From positions 1 to 64,000 of the forward strand of contig NW_005434508.1 in the NCBI RefSeq assembly GCF_000315625.1: DNA of 64,000 nucleotides, read 5' to 3'. Shown here in pieces: positions 1 to 64,000 of this stretch. The notes below the pieces were generated by a model, which had not been told where the DNA came from, ran no database searches, and saw nothing but the letters and a program-made list of their open reading frames with translations. The stretch is from Guillardia theta CCMP2712 (taxonomy: Eukaryota > Protista > Cryptophyta). Made by a program: the position numbers and the translations under genes. Positions within the stretch are counted from its first letter, which is position 1, and the number at the start of each line of letters is the position of its first letter.

Positions 1-307
1 AGGAGGAGGGAGAGGAGAGAAGGGAGGGGAAGAGGTAGAGGGAGAGGTGAGGAGAGAACGGGGAGGAGGGAGGAGGGGAGGGGAGGAGGAGGAACACTAG
101 AGAAGGAGGAGGAGGGAGAGGTAGAGGAAAAGGTAGAGGTGGGGGAAGATTGGGGATGAGGGAGGTGGGGGGGTAGAGGAAGACAAGAAAAGAAGGAGGG
201 AGAGGGAGAGGAAACAAAAATCCTGACATTCTCGGGATGAGCTCTCGGATCGATGCAATCTTGTAGAACCTGCGGCAGTAGAGTCGGAAGTGCGGAAAAC
301 ATGGCAG

Positions 308-361
<54 letters not shown>

Positions 362-2139
362 GGAGGAGGAGGAGTAAGAGGAAGCAGGGGCTCGCACCAG
401 TTTTTGCACGTCTCCCGCGCTTCTTCAGTGACATCTTTGGGACTGTTAGGACGAGCAGTCAGGGGATGGAGCAGCAGAAAACGTGAGCTGGTCGTACCAG
501 AAATCCTCCACCCTGGTCTTCGCCTTGCCCTCCGGGGTCAAACCCTGCGTATGGGAGTGAGAAAGAGGTAGAAGTTGAGAGGAAGGAGGAGGAGAGGGAG
601 GGGAAGATGAAAGAAAGCATGGATGGATCAATGTGAGGGAGGGAGGGAGAGGTGGCAGAAGTGGAGTGAGGGCAAAGAGGAGGGTAAAATGTCGATCTAA
701 GGGAGAGAAGACGGAGGGAAGGGAGGGGAGGGGAGGGTGGAGAGGAAAGTATGGATGGATTGTTGTGAATGAGGGAGGAAAAGGTGGAAGAGGAGGAAGG
801 GGAGGAAGGGGGTAGCGAAGAGGAAGGGGAGAGAGGAGGGGAAGGTGAGGAACGGAGCTCAAAAACCTTCTGCTTGATCCTCTCAAACACCAGCCGCCCG
901 AACGTGTCCAGGATCTCAGTGACAAGGACGAACAGGGAGGGGTAGAACTGAGGCGTGCTCGAGTCGCCCAGCAGCTTCGAGCACTGGATCGCCATCTTCA
1001 GCGCCTTCACCCGCTCCTCCTTGTTCCAAGCCCTCGCCAGCTCCTCGTTCAGCTCCGTCATCTTGGTTACGTACTCCCTCGCGTTGTACCGCACCATGCT
1101 GACCTGCGAGACAAGCTTTTACTCCTCCTCCTCCTTCGCTCCTCCTCCTTCGCTCCTCGTCCCTCGCTCCTCGTCCCTCGCTCTTCGTCCCCCCTCGATC
1201 CCTCCTCCTCATATTCCTCCCTCATCATTTCTTGCCTCCTCATATCATCACTACAACCCCCCCCACCCTCCCCTCCCCCTTCTGACCTCGTTATCTCCAT
1301 CATCGATCGAGTCAAGACGAGCCTTCAGTGTGTTGGCTCCTCTTCCTGCCTTGGCGACTTCCACAGACACGAAGGAGGGCATCTGAATCGTCCCAGTCGT
1401 CGTGAAGCTCTGCACCAGCTGCGTCTTGCGGACCTGCGGCGTTCGAGTGAGTGAGTGAGGGAAGCCCCAAAAAGAAGCCTCGTACATTCCAAGGGACGAA
1501 CAGAGGGTATGCCTCCTCCCCCTCCTCCTCTTCCTCCTCCTTGGCTGCTTCTGCGGAGCAGGAACCGTCATCTCGCCGTGGGGAAGCACCTGACATGCTC
1601 GACAGAGCGTCTTGCTACCTGGCTTGCGGGCCTGGGAAGAAGCATGCACAGCTCGCGACAGAGGGTCTGAGGAGGAGGGTTACAGGTCCGGCTGTGGGTC
1701 GAGGATGAGGATTGCCTGTGAGAGGATCACGAGTCTCCTCGCGTGCGAAGCTCGACAGCGGATCCTTGAAGGAGGACAGAGGGTCGCTTGCCTGCTCCTC
1801 CTTCTTCTGCCAGCGCACAGTTCATGGAGGTACAGGAGGACGAGAGGGACGGACCTTGGCTTGTTCGGGGGCTTCTCTCTTCACATGGTCAAGAGGATGG
1901 GAGGAGGTGGGGGTCAAGAGGGCCTCTTGAGCTGGCAGCATCATCAACGCAGAGCATCATCATCATCAACCAAGAGCAGCATCATCAACGCAGAGCATCA
2001 TCATCATCAACCAAGAGCAGCATCATCAACGCAGAGCATCATCGGCGCATGGCGTCGTCGGAGCACGGCGCTTACCTTTCAGCAGAGGTCTCAACGAAGG
2101 CTCCCATCTCGTACTCAGGCTCTCCCTATCCTCCACCAT
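1..2139 (-). CDS. VPS35L: VPS35 endosomal protein-sorting factor-like (C16orf62/Retriever subunit); multi-exon, 3' part continues off the left edge; start approximate
   Basis: Exon 866-1100 encodes EYVTKMTELNEELARAWNKEERVKALKMAIQCSKLLGDSSTPQFYPSLFVLVTEILDTFGRLVFERI, which matches the conserved N-terminal VPS35L block as I recall it. Further short exons are separated by purine/pyrimidine-tract introns. Confidence 0.85.
1935..2043. repeat. Intronic 41-bp minisatellite (~2.6 copies)
   Basis: gcagcatcatcaacgcagagcatcatcatcatcaaccaaga repeated head-to-tail with no spacers. Confidence 0.85.
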
Positions 2140-42602: not shown

Positions 42603-43850
42603 AGCGTCACGGCGTGAAGCTGTTCGCTGTGACGGTGTCAGTGATCTGGCCTCAGGCCTCTCAGGCCAGAGACGATTGCATTTTAAGCGTTTAGTGGGCT
42701 GGGCCGGGGGACTGGTCTCCAAACTCAACTGATACCTTCACTGAGTCACTTAACTGCGCGCAGGGACAGCAGTCGGCAGGATGAGGGCCCTTGGTTCTTG
42801 CTGTCTTCTCTCTTCTCGCTGGCCTGTACGACAATGTCAGTGTCAAGCCTCCTCTACTCTCCTGATTGTCCTCGTATGATTTTTAAATCACATCGAAGCC
42901 TGGCTTTGAAGCTTGTGTTTCAACGGTTCCATTCTCTGGGAGTCCCTTCCGGATCATCTGACCTATCATCTGAGTCATGGCATGATCATCTGACATATCA
43001 TCTGAGTCATGGCATGATGCCGCCACTCGAACCGAGCAAGGTCGCGCGGCTGGAGATCAGCCTGATCCCGATTACTTCATCAGTTTGATGCCGCCGGGCC
43101 CGGGAATCCACTCTTTACTCACTAGCCAATTTTTTTAAACTTTTTTTTTGCAAACAGGTATTTTTTTCCCATTGTAATGTGTCATTACTACTCAACCGTA
43201 CGTTGACGGATAAGGCCGAAAGTTACTACCGTCGGTACGGCCCATACCGTACGCCTTGTAGTTTTTAACTTCCAAAGTTCAAGCTCACGCTAGTAGCCAA
43301 GTCACCCGGTAGGTCCCAGTGGTTCTCCCAGAGGGACCGGGGGGTGGGGGGTGTGACGCTGCTGTTGACCTCTGGGGAGTCGAACGGTCACTCGCTACCC
43401 GAGGTGAGCGCGGAGAGACGGTCGAAGGAGTCAGAAGTTAACTTCCGAAGTTAACAACAGTCTGTAGGCCCTCCCTCAAGAAGTCAGAGAGCCGTTACTG
43501 TACGGGTGGCTCACTCTAGTTCACGCGGGGTGGGGGGTACTGGATTGGCTAAATGAGGCGATCAGATGTTGGATCCGTTGTTGGTCGGTTAGGATAAGGA
43601 TGACCGTGACCTCGTCAATCTCAGCTCCTCATAACAATCTATCCTCGAACTCTCCCCTCGCACTCTCGCACCCCCTCTCCCTGCCACCCTCCCGTCTCCC
43701 TCCCCTTCCTCCCCTCTTTTGTCTTTCTTCCTGTTCCCATCTGCTTGCATCGCTGCTGTCTAGGTCGTCGCATTCCTCTCGGTCGCGTCTATCCCAAGCG
43801 GTTCTGGAACTTCTACCTGATACGACGAGCGTGTCCTCCTTTGAGACTCC

Positions 43851-46800
43851 ATGCCGCCGTCTGAGACGAAGTGTCTGATCTTTCTCGTGTCATTTCTGCT
43901 CTCCTCGTGCTGGGGGAAAGCAAGCAACCGGGATGATGATCTTAGTGTCAAGAGGCTTACTGGCCGCCCATGGCACGTTCTAAACATGAAGGACGTTCCT
44001 TTGAGGAAGCTTGTCTTCGATGACAAGTCCAAGAGCTCTACTCGCTCCATATCCTCTAGCTTGAGCCTCTACGTTGTTCGGGTGTCCGACCCCAGAGCAG
44101 TGGTCGCCAGCTTGAGGTCGATCGCGGCGGGCAAGTACATGCAGTACTATCCTCACGACACCTACCTCATGGCGCTCGATGCCGCGCACGCAGAGGCCGT
44201 CCATTCCCTCCGGGGGGTCGAGGGCGTGTTTGCTATGCCGGCGGAGGCCAAGACAGCGTCTCGTGCTGCTCAGGTCAGAGCGGCGGCAGGGGCCACGGCC
44301 ACGTTGGACGTGCAAGTGGCAGTGACGAACGAGACGCGAGGAACGTTTGCGAGCACGCTGATGTCATGGCAGCGAGATCTCCGCAAGGTTGTACCTCCTT
44401 CCTCCTTCACCATGCGATGGGCCAGCACGAGCAAGGTGGTGGTGGTTGTGGACGTCGCACAGGAAGACGCTGTGTGGGCCTGGCTGGCAGAGCAGCCGCT
44501 GGTGGTCTGTATCGAGGAGCGGCCGACTTTCATCATCAACAACAAGTATGCGGTGAGTGCAGCTGCTTCCTCCCTCCTGCTCCTGACTTGCCCACCTAGT
44601 CCATGGCCGTGCAGTCCAATGATGGAACGCAAAACAAGCTCTGGAGCCAGGGCCTGCTGGGCTCCGGCGAGATCGTCGGGTGCGCGGACACTGGGGTGGA
44701 CTACGACAGCTGTTTCTTCCAGGACCCCAACCAGCAGGTGAAGACGTGTCAGGGCCTGGGAGCCCCCGCAAACTGCGTCAACATGAACCATAGGAAGATC
44801 GTCTCCTACCGCTACTTCGCCTCCACCAACGTGGGCGACACCTCCTACGGCCATGGAACACATGTCGTCGGCTCGATCCTGGGCAACTCTCTGTCCAGCG
44901 ACTACACCGTCTCCTACAACGGAGGAGCGCCGGAAGCAAAGCTCTCATTCGACGACATCTCCTCTGACGGCAGCAGCCTGTGGCTCCCCGACGACCTCAA
45001 CACGGACTTGTTCCCTCATGCCTTCGCCGTCGGGGCCAACCTGCACTCCAACTCATGGGGGTCGTCGACCTCGGCCTACACCAGCACGGCGCAGGAGATG
45101 GATCAGTTCATCTTCGACCACGACGACTTCCTCATCCTCGTGGCTGCCGGTAACTCTGGGCCAGGAGCAGGAACCATCGGCTCCCCCGCCACGGCTAAGA
45201 ACATCCTGGCAGTGGGAGCAGGAGCCAACACGCTCGCTGCCTACCAAGACTACGACGGATACACGGGGACGGCGCATGACAAGCAGAGGACTGGCCTCGT
45301 CGACTTCTCCTCCCGCGGGCCAACTCCGGACGGACGGTTCAAGCCGGACATCGTGTGCCCGGGAGAGAGCATCCGGTCGGCCTACTCGGACGGGACCCTG
45401 ACCTCCTTCCAGTGCTCCATCGCCGAGATGAGCGGCACCTCCATGGCCACCCCGACATGCGCAGGCGCGTCAGCGCTAGTGCGTCAGTACTTCCGCGAAG
45501 GCTTCCTCTCCTCCGGGGCCCGCAACGCTTCCGCCGCCATGGCGCCGTCGGCGTCGCTGGTCAAGGCCATCATGATCCATGCGGGTCAGCCCATGTGGTA
45601 CACGGAGTCGTCGACGTGGAGGCTTCCTCCCTCGCTCCCTCACGTGTCGCAAGGGTTCGGACGGGTCGACCTCGAGTCCGTCCTCTACTTTGGCCCTTCC
45701 ACTCCCTTCAAGCTCAAGGTGCATGACCGGGAGGTCGTCGAGGACCAGCAGACCAGACACTTCTGCTTCCTCGCCCCCAGCCGCCCCTCCTCCCTTGTCT
45801 TCCGCGCCTCCCTCGTCTGGACGGATCCTCCTGCTCCTGTCGGGAGCCAGCGGACGCTGATGCACGACTTGAACCTCATGGTGCAGGACCCGAGCAGGAG
45901 GATCTTGTTCGGCAACAACCTCACGAGCAGCGGCAACCCGGTCAAGGACGACGCCAACAACTGCGAGCAGGTCACCATCTCCAACGCTACGGGCGGCATG
46001 TACCGAGTGATGGTGGAAGGGCTCGACATCCAAGGGAGCTCGCAGAAGTTCTCGCTGGTGGTCACGGGGGACGTGGAGGAGGTGACTTGCCCAGCCCTCA
46101 CTTGCCCCAACGGCTGCTCGTCACATGGAACCTGCAAGCTCGGCACCTGCTCCTGCGACATCGGCTTCCAAGGACAGGACTGCAGTGTCCCAGCTCCTCC
46201 CCTCATCAGCCCGTCCGTCTGCCAGCAAGTCACCTACGACTCTGGCAGCCCCTACTCCGGCACGACGCCTCCTGCTGCTGCTCTCCGACCGACTCCCGTC
46301 GTGGTCGAGTTCGTCTCGGACGGAAGCATCGGGGGCAAGGGCTTCTTGGCCATGTTCGGCGACTCCTCGTCGCTGCCGTCCAGCAACGGGACGAGCAACC
46401 AGGTGGCGACGCTGTTAGCATCTGAGGGGATCGTGACCGATGGGGACGGGAACTACGACAACAACTGGGTCAAGACTTGGATCCTCGCCCCTCCTCTTGC
46501 CCAGCAGGTCTACCTCAAGTTCCTCGACTTCAACGTGGAGAACGGATGGGACTTCGTGTACGTCTACGAGTGCTCTACCGCCGCCTGCTCCTCTCCGGTG
46601 CAGGTGCAGGGAAGCCCGTTCACAGGGGCTGCCGTCCCCGACCTCCTCGTCTCCTCCACGGGCATCATGAAGGTTGTCTTCACTTCCGACGGCTCAGTCA
46701 CAGCGCCGGGCTTCAGAGCTGTCTTCCTCACTCGCCTCCACGACTGCTCCAGCAGCGGGCTGGTGCAAGAGAGCTTCGGCCTCCTCTCCGACGGGATCGG

Positions 46801-49666
46801 CGCCTACGGCAACAACCTGCGCTGCTCGTTTGTGGTTCAGCCTCCCTCCTCCTCCAGCCTCCGCCTCACCTTCCTCGAGATGAACATCGAGCAGAACTTC
46901 GATCGCTTGTACCTCGGACAGTGTATCCCCCCCTCGTCCACCAGCCGTGCTCCCACCACAAGCCCAGCACCGACAACCAGCCGTGCTCCCACCACAAGCC
47001 CAGCGCCTACTACCAGCCGTGCTCCCACCACAAGCCCAGCGCCTACTACCAGCCCAGCTCCTACCACAAGCCCAGCTCCTACTACCAGCCGTGCTCCTAC
47101 CACAAGCCCAGCTCCTACTACCAGCCCAGCTCCTACTACCAGCCGTGCTCCTACCACAAGCCCAGCTCCTACTACCAGCCCAGCTCCTACTACCAGCCCT
47201 GCGCCTACGACGCCCCCGAGCTCGGGCATGACTTGCTCGATCATAAGCGGCAGCCCCTACTCAAGCACGTCGACGATACCGCTCATCACTTCCTCTACCA
47301 GCATCCTCAAGGTCTCCCTCACCTCCGATGCTCAAGCAAGCTTCCTTGCTCGCTGGGGCCCTGAGCCCTCCTACAACGCTGACGCCTGCGCCTCCTCCGC
47401 CGCCGTCGCCCTCCAAGCCGACTACGGCGGTCTCTCCGACGGGGTCGGGCTCTACAGCAACAGCGCCTCCTGCAGCTGGATCTTGGCTCCCGCCGGCGCC
47501 TCGAGCGTCACCCTCGTCTTCACCCAGCTGGACATGGAGTACGGCTACGACTACGTGTACGTCGACGAGTGCAGCGACGCCTCCTGCGCCTCCTCCACGC
47601 AGCTGGCGAGCCTGACGGGGTCGACGATGCCGGGGCCGCTTGTGAGCTCGACGGGGTACATGCGAGTGAGGATGTCGACGGACTACTCGGTGAGGCGCGA
47701 GGGCTTCAAGGCCATCTATGCGGGGTCGACGCGGGTGTACGACTGCAGCTGGGGAGGGACAGGGGCGATCGACAGCCTGCAGGGGCTGATGAGAAACATC
47801 GGAGGAGCGTCATGCGTTTGGACCATTGAGTCATCAACGTCGCTGCCTTCCGCTCGTGTTCTCTACCTCAACGCTGCTGTCAGCTCCCAAGTATCGTTCT
47901 TCTCGTGCTCCGCGGGTGGACAATCTCCTCCTCCTACTACGTCGCCGCCGCCATCTTCTTCTCCTCCTCCTCCTCCTCCGTCGACCTGCTCCTCCTACTC
48001 TGCTGTACCCGGCAGCCCCTTCACCGGTTACAGTCTTCCTACTCCCTTCACGGCCAGCAGCCCCGTCCAGCTCACCTTCACCAGTGACGCCAGCATCACC
48101 TACCAAGGCTTCCTTGCTCGCTGGGGCCCTGAGCCCTCCTACAACGCTGACGCCTGCGCCTCCTCCGCCGCCGTCGCCCTCCAAGCCGACTACGGCGGTC
48201 TCTCCGACGGGGTCGGGCTCTACAGCAACAGCGCCTCCTGCAGCTGGATCTTGGCTCCCGCCGGCGCCTCGAGCGTCACCCTCGTCTTCACCCAGCTGGA
48301 CATGGAGTACGGCTACGACTACGTGTACGTCGACGAGTGCAGCGACGCCTCCTGCGCCTCCTCCACGCAGCTGGCGAGCCTGACGGGGTCGACGATGCCG
48401 GGGCCGCTTGTGAGCTCGACGGGGTACATGCGAGTGAGGATGTCGACGGACTACTCGGTGAGGCGCGAGGGCTTCAAGGCCATCTATGCGGGGTCGACGC
48501 GGGTGTACGACTGCAGCTGGGGAGGGACAGGGGCGATCGACAGCCTGCAGGGGATGATACGTCATGCTGCAGCAAACTCACAAACATCGACGACGTGCTC
48601 TTGGAGCATCGCTCCAGCGGGCACCTCCTCCGTCTCCTTCGTGTTCCATCAGTTCGACCTCAACGCTGCTGTCAGCTCCCAAGTGTCTATTCTTGCTTGC
48701 GCGGCGGGTGGACAATCTCCTCCTCCTCCTCCTTCTCCTTCTCCTCCTTCTCCTCCTCCTCCGTCGACCTGCTCCTCCTACTCTGCTGTACCCGGCAGCC
48801 CCTTCACCGGTTACAGTCTTCCTACTCCCTTCACGGCCAGCAGCCCCGTCCAGCTCACCTTCACCAGTGACGCCAGCATCACCTACCAAGGCTTCCTTGC
48901 TCGCTGGGGCCCTGAGCCCTCCTACAACGCTGACGCCTGCGCCTCCTCCGCCGCCGTCGCCCTCCAAGCCGACTACGGCGGTCTCTCCGACGGGGTCGGG
49001 CTCTACAGCAACAGCGCCTCCTGCAGCTGGATCTTGGCTCCCGCCGGCGCCTCGAGCGTCACCCTCGTCTTCACCCAGCTGGACATGGAGTACGGCTACG
49101 ACTACGTGTACGTCGACGAGTGCAGCGACGCCTCCTGCTCCTCCTCCACGCAGCTTGCGAGCCTGACGGGGTCGACGATGCCGGGGCCGCTTGTGAGCTC
49201 GACGGGGTACATGCGAGTGAGGATGTCGACGGACTACTCGGTGAGGCGCGAGGGCTTCAAGGCCATCTATGCGGGGTCGACGCGGGTGTACGACTGCAGC
49301 TGGGGAGGGACAGGGGCGATCGACAGCCTGCAGGGGATGGTGACGGATGGGCCAGGGAACTACCAGACGTCGACGACGTGCTCTTGGAGCATCGCTCCAG
49401 CGGGCACCTCCTCCGTCTCCTTCGTCTTCCATCAGTTGGACGTGGAGGCCGGCTGGGATACGCTGGCGATCGAGGAGTGCAGCAGCGGGAGGAGAGGGCT
49501 GAAACGGCCAACCTTGTCCTCCACAGCCATCGACAGGCAGACAGTCAGCGATGCCGCGAGCGAGAGACGCGGGGAGTCAGCCTGGTCGGATGTCACGACG
49601 ACCTTGATAGATGTGTTTGGAGAGGTCGCGAAGAAAGCCAGTGAGCTGCTGTCAGGACACGTTTGA
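43851..49666 (+). CDS. Secreted subtilisin-like serine protease (S8, KP-43/TagC type) + EGF + CUB array, long copy; intron 44553-44599
   Basis: Signal peptide and prodomain; triad motifs DTG, HGTHV, GTSMA; AAGN oxyanion motif; LVWTDPPA..DLNL C-terminal barrel; EGF CPNGCSSHGTC..CSCDIGFQGQDC; 7 full plus 2 half CUB domains. Confidence 0.95.
46935..47215 (+). repeat. 18-bp coding tandem repeat encoding APTTS(P/R)
   Basis: About 16 units; about 22 units in the second copy at ~60005-60405. Confidence 0.95.
47341..49335 (+). repeat. Coding tandem repeat of CUB-pair units with 768- and 783-bp spacing
   Basis: cttccttgctcgctggggccctgag starts at 47341, 48109 and 48892, each followed by ~440 bp of near-identical sequence. 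Confidence 0.95.
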
Positions 49667-49762
49667 AGACGTAGATGTTGACATGCTAAGTTTGTTTTCT
49701 TGTAAATCATTTCATGATGCTTCCAGTCTCTTGCTTGTTTTCTCTCTCCTCCTCTCATCATG

Positions 49763-51717
49763 TCATTCTGACGTTGACCAGCGCTCAACCTCTTTCTCTG
49801 GCTCTGGCCGACAATACACATGACGAACGCCAGCAAATCTCTTCCCAAGGTAGCAGACAAGCCGCACCTGTTACATCGACTGTCAACTCTGATTCGATCC
49901 TCCTCCTCCCGCTTCTCCTCCTCCTCTGCCTTCTCCATCCTCCTCCTCTGTCTACTCAGCGATCTCGACTCATCCAGCCGTATCGTTGGTATCAACGGCC
50001 CCGCCGCAGTCTCTTCCTCCTGCTCTCTTTCATGCTCTTCTCCTTCCTCACCTGCGGGTCCAGGTAGGTCGTGTCCATGAGCGCCTACACGGGATCAGCA
50101 GGAGCACACTTGCTGCAGAGAGATGAAGCGAGGAGATGCAGGAGGAGCAGGAGAAGAACAAGCAAGACAGACACACTGAAGGAGGAGGCAGGCAAGGAAG
50201 CAGCAAGAGGGTCAGCAAGAGAAGGAGGAGCAGGTGGAGATGGAGGAGATGGAGGAGCTAGCGGAGCAGCAAGAGAAGGGGGAGCATGAGGAGGAGAAGG
50301 AGGGTTTGCGACCTCATCAGGATCGAAGAACTCTTTCGGCAGGGCTCGCTGCAGAGCTCCTACGAGAGCCTGCAGAGAAAGTGAGGAGGGAGAGAGAGAG
50401 CGGGGTTAGGGTGAGAGAGGAAGAGGGAAGGAGACTGAGCAGACGACTGAGAGGGAGAGGAGGGGAATGAAACGAGGGAGAGGAGGACGAGGATGAGACT
50501 ACAAGACGAGGAGGGAGATTAAAAAGGAGAACTAGCAAATGCATGTAAAGCAGAGGGGGGCTCGGAGGAAGAGAAAGATAGGAGGAGAGGGGAGGAGAGA
50601 GGAGGAGAGAGGAGGAGAGGGGAGAAAGGAGGCGAGCAAGAGAAGAGAGGAGGAGGTACTTCAGGGTTCTTTGGAGGTCTGTTGAGAGGCTCAGGAGTCA
50701 GTCGAAGCTCTTCCACTGAGATGATCATGCGGGTGGGAACGCTGGGGGCCTGGAAGCAAACAATGAGGAAAACATCCTCCTGCATCACGTCCATGCGCTC
50801 CTCTCTCCCTTCCTCCTCCTTTCTCCCTTTCGCTTCCTCTTCCATCCCCCTCCCCCCCTCTCGCTTGCAACTTTCTCGCTCCCTGCCTGCTGCCTCCCTC
50901 CTTCACTCCCTCCCATTATTCGTTCTCCTACACATCTATCGAGCCTTACCTCACTCATGTTGTAAGAGCACTTCACCTCGAACAGGCCTCGCGTCCTTGA
51001 TCCCGTCAGCCTCCCCCCTCAAGGTCCAACAAGCACATCAAGTACCTCAACTCTTCTGCCTGCCCCGTCACATCCTCCCGGTACTCCCACCTTGCCTGAT
51101 GCACCAACTCCCGCGCCCCTCCGTCGATCCTGCTCCTGATGTCTCTGACCTGCTTAAGAATCAGAGACAAGGGAAGACCAGGAGGGAACGAGGAAAGAAA
51201 AATCCAAGAGGAGGAGGAGGAGGAGGAGGAGGAGGAGGAGGAGGAGGAGGAGGAGGAGCAGGAGCAGGAGGAGCAGGAGCAAGAGCAGCAGGAGGGTGTG
51301 GAGTTTATTTCGGCTGTTGAGCAGGACCTTGAGGTTGGTGTCGGGCGAGAGGAGGCGAGAGGTCGAGTACAGGAGCTGCCAATCCCCCGACACGGCGAAG
51401 TTGAAGAAGTTGACGTCGAAAGGAAAGATCTGCTGCTGCTCTAGCTCCGCTATGCACTTCCTTATCATGGTCCTGCTCTCCTCGTCCGACGTCCCTTCCC
51501 GGATGTGCGTCAGCAGGCGCTGGGGAGCCTTTGCTATGTAATCTTGGAAGCCTGCGTCTGAAAAAGCATCGTCGTCTCCCAAGCTCATGCTCCTGCAGAC
51601 AGCTCTTCTGCATCTGAGGCTCGGAGTGAGCTGGCCTGGTAGGTGAAGTTGAAAGCAATCGCAGAGAGAGAAGAGGAGGAGGGCAAAGGAGCAGGATATC
51701 CGGGAGAAAATCTTCAT
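49763..51717 (-). CDS. Plastid lipid-associated protein/fibrillin-like protein with bipartite presequence; multi-exon
   Basis: MKIFSRISCSFALLLFSLCDC-F presequence; IRKCIAELEQ..VSGDWQLLYST; 3' exons ALVGALQRALPKEFFDPDE|ALMDTTYLDPQ|VRLVCYLGKRFAGVRHVYCR..STSE*, where TTYLD..R is the fibrillin C-terminal motif. Confidence 0.8.
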
Positions 51718-58106: not shown

Positions 58107-59010
58107 GCCCCCAGCGTTCCTAACACTCCTCTGCTCTGCTCTGCTCTGCTCTTCTCCTCTCTTTCTCTCTGCCCATGAGCCCCCACCTCCCCTGAGACAG
58201 GCCCATTCTGTTTTACATGCAATTGCTAGTTCTCCGTTTTGATCACCCTTCTCGTCTTGTCACCTCAGTGCTCAGTCTCCTTCCCTCTTCCTGAGTCTCT
58301 CACCCTAACCCCGCTCTCTCTCCTCCTCCTCACTTTCTCCGCAGGCTCTCGTAGGAGCTCTGCAGCGAGCCCTGCCAAAAGAGTTCTTCGATCCTGATGA
58401 GGTCGCATATCCTCCTTCTTCTCCTCCAGCACCTTCTCTAGCTGCTATTCTGCTCAATCGCCTGCTTCTCTTCCTCGTCCTCCTCATGCTCCCCCTTCTC
58501 TTGCTGCTCCACTAGCTCCTCCATCTCCTCCATCTCCACCTGCTCCTCCTTCTCTTGCTGACCCTCTTGCTGCTTCCTTGCCTGCCTCCTCCTTCAGTGT
58601 GTCTGTCTCGCTTGTTCTTCTCCTGCTCCTCCGCCATCTCCTCGCTTCATCTCTCTGCAGCAAGTGTGCTCCTGCTGATCCCGTGTAGGCGCTCATGGAC
58701 ACGACCTACCTGGACCCGCAGGTGAGGAAGGAGAAGAGAATCGAAGAGAGCAGGAGGAAGAGACTGCAGCGGGGCCGTTGATACCAACGATACGGCTGGA
58801 TGAGTCGAGATCGCTGAGTAGACAGAGGAGGAGGATGGAGAAGGCAGAGGAGGAGGAGAAGCGGGAGGAGGAGGATCGAATCAGAGTTGACAGTCGATGT
58901 AACAGGTGCGGCTTGTCTGCTACCTTGGGAAGAGATTTGCTGGCGTTCGTCATGTGTATTGTCGGCCAGAGCCAGAGAAAGAGGTTGAGCGCTGGTCAAC
59001 GTCAGAATGA
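58107..59010 (+). pseudogene. 5'-truncated duplicate of the fibrillin-like gene (last three exons plus a broken exon)
   Basis: Exons ALVGALQRALPKEFFDPDE, ALMDTTYLDPQ and VRLV..STSE* are intact; the upstream exon is cut to APSVP followed by TAA; no 5' half. Confidence 0.75.
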
Positions 59011-59106
59011 CATGATGAGAGGAGGAGAGAGAAAACAAGCAAGAGACTGGAAGCATCATGAAATGATTTACAAGAAAACAAACTTAGCATGTCAACATCT
59101 ACGTCT

Positions 59107-62100
59107 TCAAACGTGTCCTGACAGCAGCTCACTGGCTTTCTTCGCGACCTCTCCAAACACATCTATCAAGGTCGTCGTGACATCCGACCAGGCTGACTCC
59201 CCGCGTCTCTCGCTCGCGGCATCGCTGACTGTCTGCCTGTCGATGGCTGTGGAGGACAAGGTTGGCCGTTTCAGCCCTCTCCTCCCGCTGCTGCACTCCT
59301 CGATCGCCAGCGTATCCCAGCCGGCCTCCACGTCAAACTGATGGAAGACGAAGGAGACGGAGGAGGTGCCCGCTGGAGCGATGCTCCAAGAGAACGTCGT
59401 GGACGTCTGGTAGTTCCCTGGCCCATCCGTCACCATCCCCTGCAGGCTGTCGATCGCCCCTGTCCCTCCCCAGCTGCAGTCGTACACCCGCGTCGACCCC
59501 GCATAGATGGCCTTGAAGCCCTCTCGCCTCACCGAGTAGTCCGTCGACATCCTCACTCGCATGTACCCCGTCGAGCTCACAAGCGGCCCCGGCATCGTCG
59601 ACCCCGTCAGGCTCGCAAGCTGCGTGGAGGAGGAGCAGGAGGCGTCGCTGCACTCGTCGACGTACACGTAGTCGTAGCCGTACTCCATGTCCAGCTGGGT
59701 GAAGACGAGGGTGACGCTCGAGGCGCCGGCGGGAGCCAAGATCCAGCTGCAGGAGGCGCTGTTGCTGTAGAGCCCGACCCCGTCGGAGAGACCGCCGTAG
59801 TCGGCTTGGAGGGCGACGGCGGCGGGGGAGGCGCAGGCGTCAGCGTTGTAGGAGGGCTCAGGGCCCCAGCGAGCAAGGAAGCTTGCTTGAGCATCGGAGG
59901 TGAGGGAGACCTTGAGGATGCTGGTAGAGGAAGTGATGAGCGGTATCGTCGACGTGCTTGAGTAGGGGCTGCCGCTTATGATCGAGCAAGTCATGCCCGA
60001 GCTCGGGGGCGTCGTAGGCGCTGGGCTCGTAGTAGGAGCTGGGCTGGTAGTAGGAGCTTGGCTTGTGGTGGCAGCACGGCTGGTAGTAGGAGCTGGGCTG
60101 GTGGTGGGAGCACGGCTGGTAGTAGGCGCTGGGCTTGTGGTGGGAGCACGGCTGGTAGTAGGCGCTGGGCTTGTAGTGGGAGCTGGGCTGGTGGTAGGAG
60201 CTGGGCTGGTGGTAGGAGCTGGGCTGGTAGTAGGCACTGGGCTTGTGGTGGGAGCACGGCTGGTAGTAGGCGCTGGGCTTGTGGTGGGAGCACGGCTGGT
60301 AGTAGGCGCTGGGCTTGTGGTGGGAGCACGGCTGGTAGTAGGAGCTGGGCTGGTAGACGAGGTTGTTGGAGCTGGGCTTGTGGTGGGAGCACGGCTGGTG
60401 GACGAGGGGGGGATACACTGTCCGAGGTACAAGCGATCGAAGTTCTGCTCGATGTTCATCTCGAGGAAAGTGAGGCGGAGGCTGGAGGAGGAGGGAGGCT
60501 GAACCACAAACGAGCAGCGCAGGTTGTTGCCGTAGGCGCCGATCCCGTCGGAGAGGAGGCCGAAGCTCTCCTGCACCAGCCCACTGCTGGAGCAGTCGTG
60601 GAGGCGAGTGAGGAAGACAGCTCTGAAGCCCGGCGCTGTGACTGAGCCGTCGGAAGTGAAGACAACCTTCATGATGCCCGTGGAGGAGACGAGGAGGTCG
60701 GGGACGGCAGCCCCTGTGAACGGGCTTCCCTGCACCTGCACCGGAGAGGAGCAGGCGGCGGTAGAGCACTCGTAGACGTACACGAAGTCCCATCCGTTCT
60801 CCACGTTGAAGTCGAGGAACTTGAGGTAGACCTGCTGGGCAAGAGGAGGGGCGAGGATCCAAGTCTTGACCCAGTTGTTGTCGTAGTTCCCGTCCCCATC
60901 GGTCACGATCCCCTCAGATGCTGACAGCGTCACCACCTGGTTGCTCGTCCCGTTGCTGGACGGCAGCGACGAGGAGTCGCCGAACATGGCCAAGAAGCCC
61001 TTGCCCCCGATGCTTCCGTCCGAGACGAACTCGACCACGACGGGAGTCGGTCGAAGAGCAGCAGCTGGAGGCGTCGTGCCGGAGTAGGGGCTGCCAGAGT
61101 CGTAGGTGACTTGCTGGCAGACGGACGGGCTGATGAGGGGAGGAGCTGGGACACTGCAGTCCTGTCCTTGGAAGCCGATGTCGCAGGAGCAGGTGCCGAG
61201 CTTGCAGGTTCCATGTGACGAGCAGCCGTTGGGGCAAGTGAGGGCTGGGCAAGTCACCTCCTCCACGTCCCCCGTGACCACCAGCGAGAACTTCTGCGAG
61301 CTCCCTTGGATGTCGAGCCCTTCCACCATCACTCGGTACATGCCGCCCGTAGCGTTGGAGATGGTGACCTGCTCGCAGTTGTTGGCGTCGTCCTTGACCG
61401 GGTTGCCGCTGCTCGTGAGGTTGTTGCCGAACAAGAGCCTCCTGCTCGGGTCCTGCACCAAGAGGTTCAGGTCATGCATCAGCGTCCGCTGGCTCCCGAC
61501 AGGAGCAGGAGGATCCGTCCAGACGAGAGATGCGCGGAAGACAAGGGAGGACGGGCGGCTGGGGGCGAGGAAGCAGAAGTGTCTGGTCTGCTGGTCCTCG
61601 ACGACCTCCCGGTCATGCACCTTGAGCTTGAAGGGAGTGGAAGGGCCAAAGTAGAGGACGGACTCGAGGTCGACCCGTCCGAACCCTTGCGACACGTGAG
61701 GGAGCGAGGGAGGAAGCCTCCACGTCGACGACTCCGTGTACCACATGGGCTGACCCGCATGGATCATGATGGCCTTGACCAGCGACGCCGACGGCGCCAT
61801 GGCGGCGGAAGCGTTGCGGGCCCCGGAGGAGAGGAAGCCTTCGCGGAAGTACTGACGCACTAGCGCTGACGCGCCTGCGCATGTCGGGGTGGCCATGGAG
61901 GTGCCGCTCATCTCGGCGATGGAGCACTGGAAGGAGGTCAGGGTCCCGTCCGAGTAGGCCGACCGGATGCTCTCTCCCGGGCACACGATGTCCGGCTTGA
62001 ACCGTCCGTCCGGGGTTGGCCCGCGGGAGGAGAAGTCGACGAGGCCAGTCCTCTGCTTGTCATGCGCCGTCCCCGTGTATCCGTCGTAGTCTTGGTAGGC

Positions 62101-63488
62101 AGCGAGCGTGTTGGCTCCTGCTCCCACTGCCAGGATGTTCTTGGCCGTGGCGGGGGAGCCGATGGTTCCTGCTCCTGGCCCAGAGTTACCGGCAGCCACG
62201 AGGATGAGGAAGTCGTCGTGGTCGAAGATGAACTGATCCATCTCCTGCGCCGTGCTGGTGTAGGCCGAGGTCGACGACCCCCACGAGTTGGAGTGCAGGT
62301 TGGCCCCGACGGCGAAGGCATGAGGGAACAAGTCCGTGTTGAGGTCGTCGGGGAGCCACAGGCTGCTGCCGTCAGAGGAGATGTCGTCGAATGAGAGCTT
62401 TGCTTCCGGCGCTCCTCCGTTGTAGGAGACGGTGTAGTCGCTGGACAGAGAGTTGCCCAGGATCGAGCCGACGACATGTGTTCCATGGCCGTAGGAGGTG
62501 TCGCCCACGTTGGTGGAGGCGAAGTAGCGGTAGGAGACGATCTTCCTATGGTTCATGTTGACGCAGTTTGCGGGGGCTCCCAGGCCCTGACACGTCTTCA
62601 CCTGCTGGTTGGGGTCCTGGAAGAAACAGCTGTCGTAGTCCACCCCAGTGTCCGCACACCCGACGATCTCGCCGGAGCCCAGCAGGCCCTGGCTCCAGAG
62701 CTTGTTTTGCGTTCCATCATTGGACTGCACGGCCATGGACTAGGTGGGCAAGTCAGGAGCAGGAGGGAGGAAGCAGCTGCACTCACCGCATACTTGTTGT
62801 TGATGATGAAAGTCGGCCGCTCCTCGATACAGACCACCAGCGGCTGCTCTGCCAGCCAGGCCCACACAGCGTCTTCCTGTGCGACGTCCACAACCACCAC
62901 CACCTTGCTCGTGCTGGCCCATCGCATGGTGAAGGAGGAAGGAGGTACAACCTTGCGGAGGTCTCGCTGCCATGACATCAGCGTGCTCGCAAACGTTCCT
63001 CGCGTCTCGTTCGTCACTGCCACTTGCACGTCCAACGTGGCCGTGGCCCCTGCCGCCGCTCTGACCTGAGCAGCACGAGACGCTGTCTTGGCCTCCGCCG
63101 GCATGGCAAACACGCCCTCGACCCCCCGGAGGGAATGGACGGCCTCTGCGTGCGCGGCATCGAGCGCCATGAGGTAGGTGTCGTGAGGATAGTACTGCAT
63201 GTACTTGCCCGCCGCGATCGACCTCAAGCTGGCGACCACTGCTCTGGGGTCGGACACCCGAACAACGTAGAGGCTCAAGCTAGAGGACATGGAGCGAGTA
63301 GAGCTTTTGGACTTGTCATCGAAGACAAGCTTCCTCAAAGGAACGTCCTTCATGTTTAGAACGTGCCATGGGCGGCCAGTAAGCCTCTTGACACTGAGAT
63401 CATCATCCCGGTTGCTTGCTTTCCCCCAGCACGAGGAGAGCAGAAATGACACGAGAAAGATCAGACACTTCGTCTCAGACGGCGGCAT
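59107..63488 (-). CDS. Secreted subtilase-EGF-CUB protease, short copy (3 full plus 2 half CUB domains); intron 62740-62786
   Basis: Near-identical to 43851-49666 with an intact triad; exon 2 ORF is 1209 aa versus 1687 aa. Confidence 0.95.
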
Positions 63489-64000
63489 GGAGTCTCAAAG
63501 GAGGACACGCTCGTCGTATCAGGTAGAAGTTCCAGAACCGCTTGGGATAGACGCGACCGAGAGGAATGCGACGACCTAGACAGCAGCGATGCAAGCAGAT
63601 GGGAACAGGAAGAAAGACAAAAGAGGGGAGGAAGGGGAGGGAGACGGGAGGGTGGCAGGGAGAGGGGGTGCGAGAGTGCGAGGGGAGAGTTCGAGGATAG
63701 ATTGTTATGAGGAGCTTGATCTATCGGGGAACATTGACGAGATCACGGTGCTTGCTGTTGGCTTTACTGCTATTTTACTACACCCGATCCTTATCCTAAC
63801 CGACAAAATGACCATTCGGTCTTCCATGTAGCAAATGCGGTAACTTCTCAGGCTACCCCCACCCCACTAAACCCTATCAACGGGACCCCTACCCCACCAC
63901 TTCTTTGTTCCGAACAGCCTAATCCCTACAGCAACTTAGCAACTGAAACATAAAACCGTGAAACTGAGGCTTCACCGCCTCCTCACTTCACTCTTGAGCC

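Follow-up and report, generated by a model that had tools for sequence, protein, structure and literature searches.

The window analysed here is a 64,000-nucleotide (nt) stretch of Guillardia theta CCMP2712 DNA (NCBI RefSeq assembly GCF_000315625.1, contig NW_005434508.1, positions 1-64,000 of the forward strand), which carries two closely related genes for proteases with arrays of CUB domains, one on each strand. The forward-strand gene has four CUB modules and is largely contained in an open reading frame (ORF) at 44603-49666 (+; 1687 amino acids (aa)); its paralogue has two modules and an ORF at 59107-62736 (-; 1209 aa). After splicing of a single intron, the joined open frames measure 1922 aa in the four-module gene and 1444 aa in the paralogue. 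The gene product is a secreted S8 subtilase with C-terminal modules on Pro/Thr-rich stalks: the motifs DTG, HGTH and SGTSMA are present in the translation together with a match to the PF00082 profile, and the whole protein matches the Pfam CUB family (PF00431, E = 7.9e-65) in 6 stretches, all C-terminal to an EGF-like domain. The features of the locus are as follows, with residues in ORF numbering, second-half CUBs labelled b and first-half CUBs labelled a.

43851..44552 (+): exon 1 of the four-module gene, 234 codons (ORF), with a hydrophobic signal-like N-terminus and a propeptide region
44553..44599 (+): sole intron, 47 nt, GT..AG, same sequence as the paralogue intron
44660..45580 (+): S8 subtilase catalytic domain, ORF residues 20-326 (Pfam PF00082, E = 3.8e-40)
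46085..46195 (+): EGF-like domain, residues 495-531 (Pfam EGF_Teneurin, 32.4 bits)
46220..46924 (+): module 1, C540-C774 (profile mapping and AlphaFold2), made up of b1 (46220-46357), a nested complete CUB (46391-46726) and a1 (46745-46924), the parts from profile mapping
46925..47233 (+): mucin-like Pro/Thr/Ser/Ala linker, 103 aa, 36-bp repeats (tandem repeats, composition)
47234..47908 (+): module 2, C878-C1102, both outer halves degenerate (sequence reading, profile)
47909..47986 (+): Pro-rich linker, 26 aa, Pro 12/26 (composition)
47987..48700 (+): module 3, C1129-C1366 (sequence reading, profile)
48701..48769 (+): Pro-rich linker, 23 aa, Pro 12/23 (composition)
48770..49480 (+): module 4, C1390-C1626, made up of b4, a nested CUB and a4 (49295-49480), ending in Glu-Glu-Cys (EEC) (profile)
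49481..49666 (+): 61-residue non-CUB tail and stop codon (CUB profile, -0.8 bits)
59107..63488 (-): two-module paralogue, 1444 aa after splicing, with its intron at 62740-62786 and poly(A) near 59054
60982-61119, 60415-60594, 59293-59988 and 59110-59292 (-): b1, a1, the second module and the tail of the paralogue, respectively

Domain boundaries were mapped with a CUB profile for which only complete CUBs of the family were used (112 positions, with loop cysteines at positions 61 and 66). An initial annotation of this DNA had described an array that begins with only the second half of a CUB and ends with only the first half, both broken at the same Cys-loop-Cys with one cysteine each, and the mapping bears out both the coordinates and the break point. 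Directly after the EGF-like domain, b1 (C540-F585, 46220-46357) matches profile positions 65-112 (23 bits, E = 3e-9), and the array closes with a4 (C1565-C1626, 49295-49480), which matches positions 7-64 (62 bits, E = 2e-21). This coverage is complementary, so both end halves break inside the Cys-x4-Cys loop and each retains one of its cysteines. With the Pfam CUB model, a4 scored 22.9 bits over positions 15-63 (cut-off 21.4), the internal second halves scored 15.7 bits over positions 74-109, which is under the cut-off, and b1 alone was undetected; the nested complete CUBs alone scored 34.8 and 46.9 bits.

The two ends belong to a periodic array, in which a unit of ~235 residues (Cys, second half, complete CUB, first half, Cys) occurs four times, or twice in the paralogue, with a cysteine at both ends of every module and Pro/Thr-rich linkers only between modules. 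In terms of profile positions, first halves extend over 3/7-61/64 and second halves over 65-112, and this reversed order (65-112 before 3-64), as expected of a circularly permuted sequence, was found in every module of the window and of 6 homologues. The outer CUBs of the internal modules look degenerate in sequence relative to those of modules 1 and 4: in a2 and a3 (47744-47908 and 48512-48700) the conserved acidic E...WD motif is replaced by N-A-A-V-S-S-Q-V-S, and module 2 has short deletions in both outer halves.

Transcript evidence consisted of contigs from three runs and the raw reads of one RNA-seq run, mapped along the full paralogue region (58900-63600). The interval 62740-62786 (47 nt, GT..AG on the gene strand) is skipped in each of the three contig sets, and the splice position of the four-module gene was assigned from this result because its intron is identical. 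A single contig is unbroken over 60370-62739, spanning the junction between the EGF-like domain and the half-CUB at ~61119, and contigs are likewise unbroken over 59466-59054, spanning EEC, the tail and the stop codon. Both contigs and raw reads show a run of T that starts at 59054, placing the poly(A) site 53 nt past the stop, and no splice was seen near either half-CUB of the paralogue in contigs or raw RNA reads. Therefore, no exon is missing, neither half is spliced out and the 61-residue tail is translated. That tail had two ways of rescuing a conventional domain, as a cryptic second half or by leading to a downstream exon that completes the last CUB; the first is ruled out by its score of -0.8 bits against the complete-CUB profile, with no CUB similarity detected after EEC, and the second by the transcripts. 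The array is highly repetitive and its copy number differs between the two genes, as might be seen if a missed exon or a collapse of repeats had cut it short, but with contigs and raw reads continuous from EEC to poly(A) and across the start of b1, and with orthologues in other species ending alike, a gene-model or assembly artefact is extremely improbable. Both gene copies appear to be expressed, because a loose contig end matches a second half specific to the four-module gene.

As the initial annotation had pointed out, the two paralogues keep the same half-CUB ends despite carrying 2 and 4 modules, respectively. The agreement is not independent evidence, because both genes lie, with flanking sequence, in an inverted duplication arranged tail to tail (43623-50301 (+) versus 63716-58472 (-)), the two arms of which are 98.5-98.9% identical in nucleotide sequence; the inter-module linker of the paralogue is 142 aa, compared to 103 aa in the four-module gene. 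Independent support for the layout comes from orthologues in other species.

The closest relatives were found in cryptophyte transcriptomes. Four of them, P0157 and P0389 (both from Rhodomonas abbreviata), P0269 (Rhodomonas sp. CCMP768) and P0158, consist of an S8 domain, an EGF-like domain and exactly one module, have connectors of 8-12 residues and end 5-7 residues past the last cysteine. Both halves and both terminal cysteines are kept across species at 27-38% identity, and the module-end cysteines are conserved in all homologues. A fifth protein, P0385 (1520 aa), is without an EGF-like domain and passes from the protease through a ~190-residue Pro/Thr linker directly into a second half, followed by a complete CUB, a first half, a 54-residue linker, a second module and an 88-residue tail. 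This ~190-aa linker cannot be a loop inside a CUB because no first half lies upstream of it. Thus, the halves persist in homologues, with the half/half architecture in the Rhodomonas one-module orthologues and in P0385.

A sister subfamily with a PA domain, including G. theta GUITHDRAFT_112852 (P0272), carries three CUBs of normal order in tandem, and some of its members have inserts of 20-120 residues in the same Cys-Cys loop with the halves still in normal order. One of these, P0274, has a non-repetitive, folded-looking insert of ~120 residues (residues ~990-1115) in the Cys-Cys loop of its middle CUB, with the halves in normal order, and seems to be another, separate instance of a CUB that harbours a domain. 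A homologue search with the complete array was uninformative, as low-complexity Pro/Thr words dominated it. An exhaustive profile search returned mostly ordinary multi-CUB proteins, and three consecutive normal CUBs likewise match a pattern of second half, whole domain and first half; after a half-by-half scan of the profile matches and reading of the sequences, an array that starts with a second half and ends with a first half was found only among the cryptophyte subtilase relatives.

Structure prediction with AlphaFold2 was performed on two constructs. In run 1, the EGF-like domain and module 1 were modelled from a 13-row family alignment, with a mean predicted local distance difference test score (pLDDT) of 88.4 and a predicted template modelling score (pTM) of 0.83; the outer halves reached ~90 and the nested CUB ~95. 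The nested domain has the CUB fold, with PCPE-1 as a structural match (Z = 16.7, root mean square deviation (rmsd) 1.9 Å, 113 residues), followed by neuropilin-1 and TSG-6 (both Z = 16.6). With 4 strands in the second half and 5 in the first, the outer halves repeat the strand pattern seen in the halves of the nested CUB. In addition, single compact beta-sandwiches align from the second half through the matching first half at Z ~6, both in run 1 (43..283) and in run 2 (317..550/316..554), and weak structural matches extending across a nested domain included CD109 and TEP1r (Z = 5.6). Strand counts like those of the nested halves and compact-domain matches over both halves provide indirect structural support for a permuted outer CUB. 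Shape and feature searches of the ESM Atlas returned ordinary CUB clusters only (best template modelling score by query, 0.49).

The outer halves might instead be decayed remnants of truncated CUBs that neither fold nor pair, as could be suspected from the weak Pfam scores of the second halves (b1 alone being undetected), the degeneration of the internal first halves a2 and a3, and the loss of one cysteine from the last first half of the paralogue. Conservation of both halves and their terminal cysteines at the interspecies identities given above, a pLDDT of ~90 for both halves and retention of Ca2+-site residues in modules 1 and 4 make this very unlikely.

In run 2, we modelled paralogue residues 600-1209 (complete CUB, a1, 142-residue linker, b2', complete CUB, a2' and tail), omitting b1. 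The first complete CUB, which serves as a control for alignment depth, scored 87-94, whereas a1 in the absence of b1 fell to a pLDDT of 63-83 and lost nearly all of its strands. Both b2' (4 strands) and a2' (6 strands) were folded, at a pLDDT of ~70-82, the 142-aa linker was below 40 and the tail was a low-confidence helix. Judging by these confidence values and strand counts, AlphaFold2 matches a second half to the first half within the same module and not to the preceding one across the linker, and no structural match in the single-domain alignments of either model joins a1 with b2'. A competition construct of module 3, its linker and the start of module 4 was dropped, as the degenerate a3 made orthologues misalign.

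Of the several ways of joining the halves, the most probable is that every module closes on itself as a circularly permuted CUB that encloses a second, nested CUB and is probably stapled by its terminal cysteines. The periodic architecture, the break point, the conservation across species and the transcript structure are shown by the data; which halves pair is inferred from AlphaFold2 confidence and strand patterns, and the disulfide and the function are inferred as well. The two outer halves would fold around the nested CUB into one CUB-like beta-sandwich with a circularly permuted sequence order; the nested CUB would connect the former termini of this sandwich, and its chain would now begin and end within the Cys-x4-Cys loop. 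In complete CUBs this loop carries a disulfide, the equivalent of which would then probably join the two terminal cysteines of the module. At the array ends, b1 would pair with a1 ~175 residues downstream (C540 with C774) and a4 with b4 ~175 residues upstream (C1390 with C1626), so that no half would be an orphan and neither a whole-array ring nor filaments would be needed. The proposal of the initial annotation that the halves complement each other is thus partly supported: the AlphaFold2 models indicate complementation of a second and a first half within one chain, but the partners would be the halves of the same module and not the two ends of the array.

The connectivity can also be drawn the other way, with each first half pairing with the second half of the next module in normal order, the Pro/Thr segments forming giant CUB loops and the end halves closing a ring in cis. 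A first half, a linker and a second half do follow one another in canonical CUB order, with a cysteine flanking the linker on both sides; PA-subfamily relatives tolerate inserts of 20-120 residues in this very loop; and the one-module orthologues, as rings of one, provide no argument against it. On the other side, AlphaFold2 paired b2' with a2' and not with a1 even when b1 was absent, and the first module of P0385 is preceded by a linker without an earlier first half. The 23- and 26-residue linkers are about half Pro, which is awkward for a loop whose ends lie one disulfide apart; this composition (12/23 and 12/26 Pro) favours stiff stalks between domains. Furthermore, b1 would have to stay unpaired until ~1000 further residues had been made, while with vectorial synthesis an emerging first half would find only the second half of its own module available. 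Pairing across the linkers is, on balance, unlikely. What separates the self-closing module from the ring is one AlphaFold2 experiment read indirectly, the linker composition, P0385 and this kinetic argument.

Several points weigh against the self-closing module. Pairing was read indirectly from pLDDT, DSSP and alignment ranges, and all AlphaFold2 results are from the best of five models only. In run 2, more alignment rows covered the second module (10 versus 5), a possible bias toward that module that is offset by the first complete CUB, which has the same 5 rows and remained confident. Without b1, a1 still reached a pLDDT of 63-83 and did not collapse. The one-module orthologues fit the ring equally well, the two models being identical for a single module, and the normal-order loop inserts of the PA subfamily mean that pairing across a long insert is structurally possible. 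As a test of pairing, correlated decay of the halves was uninformative: in the paralogue, a degenerate second half occurs together with an intact first half.

Complementation between chains would have the end halves, or the halves of any module, swap to give head-to-tail dimers or filaments of the protease. Permuted and nested designs can domain-swap in principle; however, a single module is predicted with high confidence to close on itself, the 8-12-residue connectors of the one-module orthologues would give the partner in cis a very high local concentration, and no polymer-specific feature was seen, making such swapping very improbable. Distinctly unlikely, too, is a broader scheme in which halves exchange between modules or chains by runaway domain swapping with a terminal-disulfide lock, producing rings or head-to-tail filaments whose geometry is set by module number and linker length. 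The whole-array ring or filament put forward in the initial annotation accordingly finds no support in a periodic array with one-module orthologues and a single module that folds confidently, and neither does its analogy to pilin donor-strand exchange, given that a single module is predicted to be complete in cis and that one-module orthologues exist.

The function of these domains is likely that of other CUBs, Ca2+-dependent recognition of a ligand or substrate. In alignments, the nested CUBs have the residues of the Ca2+/ligand site, as do the outer halves in modules 1 and 4; a2 and a3 lack them. These residues follow the Tyr/Glu/Asp/Asp/Ser pattern known from Ca2+-binding CUBs. In modules 1 and 4, Tyr/Glu/Asp are contributed by the first half and Asp/Ser by the second half; because the residues are split in this way, the domain would have to be assembled for the site to form.

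Compared to canonical CUBs (PCPE-1, neuropilin, TSG-6, cubilin, MASP/C1s and enteropeptidase), the nested CUBs are alike in structure (Z = 15-17, rmsd 1.5-2.0 Å over ~110 residues) and, as in extracellular proteases, they lie C-terminal to the protease. The differences are that every second CUB here has its halves in reversed order around a complete CUB, and that the second disulfide belongs to a Cys-x4-Cys loop where the canonical spacing is wider. As a CUB assembled from two distant segments that enclose an entire domain, the closest precedent is the split CUB known from complement C3/C4/C5, alpha2-macroglobulin, TEP and CD109, in which the nested domain is the thioester (or C5d) domain and for which the term 'split CUB domain' has been used in C5 (PMC13219244). 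In the cryptophyte proteins the guest is another CUB rather than a thioester domain, and MG domains are absent (Pfam: only S8, EGF and CUB). The PA-domain cryptophyte subtilases (for example, GUITHDRAFT_112852, P0272) share a homologous S8 domain (36-41% identity) and C-terminal CUBs of the same Cys-x4-Cys subtype, whereas their arrays are in normal order, with a first half at the start and a second half at the end, and P0274 has its ~120-aa loop insert. In the papers covered by full-text literature searches, neither a circularly permuted CUB nor one CUB enclosed by another was found to be described, nor were cryptophyte subtilase CUBs, the only relevant item being the C3/C5 split CUB.

The module may have originated from a tandem triple CUB that lost its first first-half and its last second-half; tandem triplets of normal CUBs do occur in the PA-subfamily relatives. 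Duplication followed by truncation is a natural route to circular permutation, known from swaposin and saposin and from some DNA methyltransferases, and Uliel et al. 2001 (cited in PMC4224354) reportedly reviewed the subject. Truncation of a tandem triple CUB would leave the same layout of second half, whole domain and first half. The usual product of this route is a single permuted domain, while here the middle copy would have been kept, wrapped by the permuted one, and the whole would have become a repeat unit.

CUB ranks among the most common domains for extracellular recognition, and if the pairing is true, these proteins would be a natural example of duplicate-then-truncate permutation in which the middle copy was kept and the product then became a repeat unit. 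For annotation, the consequence is that domain finders report truncated or interrupted CUBs, which invites wrong 'repairs' of gene models and wrong domain counts. For cryptophyte biology, the architecture delimits a secreted subtilase family whose members carry two-CUB heads and mucin-like stalks.

Several minor observations concern the upstream domains, the tail and the relation between copies. No Pfam family matched exon 1 in a Pfam scan, and the EGF-like domain is kept in the Rhodomonas orthologues. The 61-residue tail (49481-49663), which is identical in the paralogue, is basic at its start, forms low-confidence helices in AlphaFold2 and is without a hydrophobic anchor; it has no detectable similarity to the 88-residue tail of P0385, and its composition resembles that of a 40-residue non-proline linker between modules in P0076. 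The paralogue contigs of the three runs also contain loose ends at 62750 (within the intron) and at 59642, and a joint from 62771 to 59622 with 25 foreign letters between, which may represent a third copy, an isoform or an assembly chimera. Two fragments from other assemblies, P0009 and P0384, show further module combinations, which suggests frequent unequal recombination within the identical nested CUBs. In the last first half of the paralogue (59392-59394, a codon on the minus strand), the second cysteine of the N-terminal CUB disulfide is replaced by Phe (T-S-T-T-F-S-W), leaving its partner cysteine unpaired, and the same change is present in P0009 and P0384.

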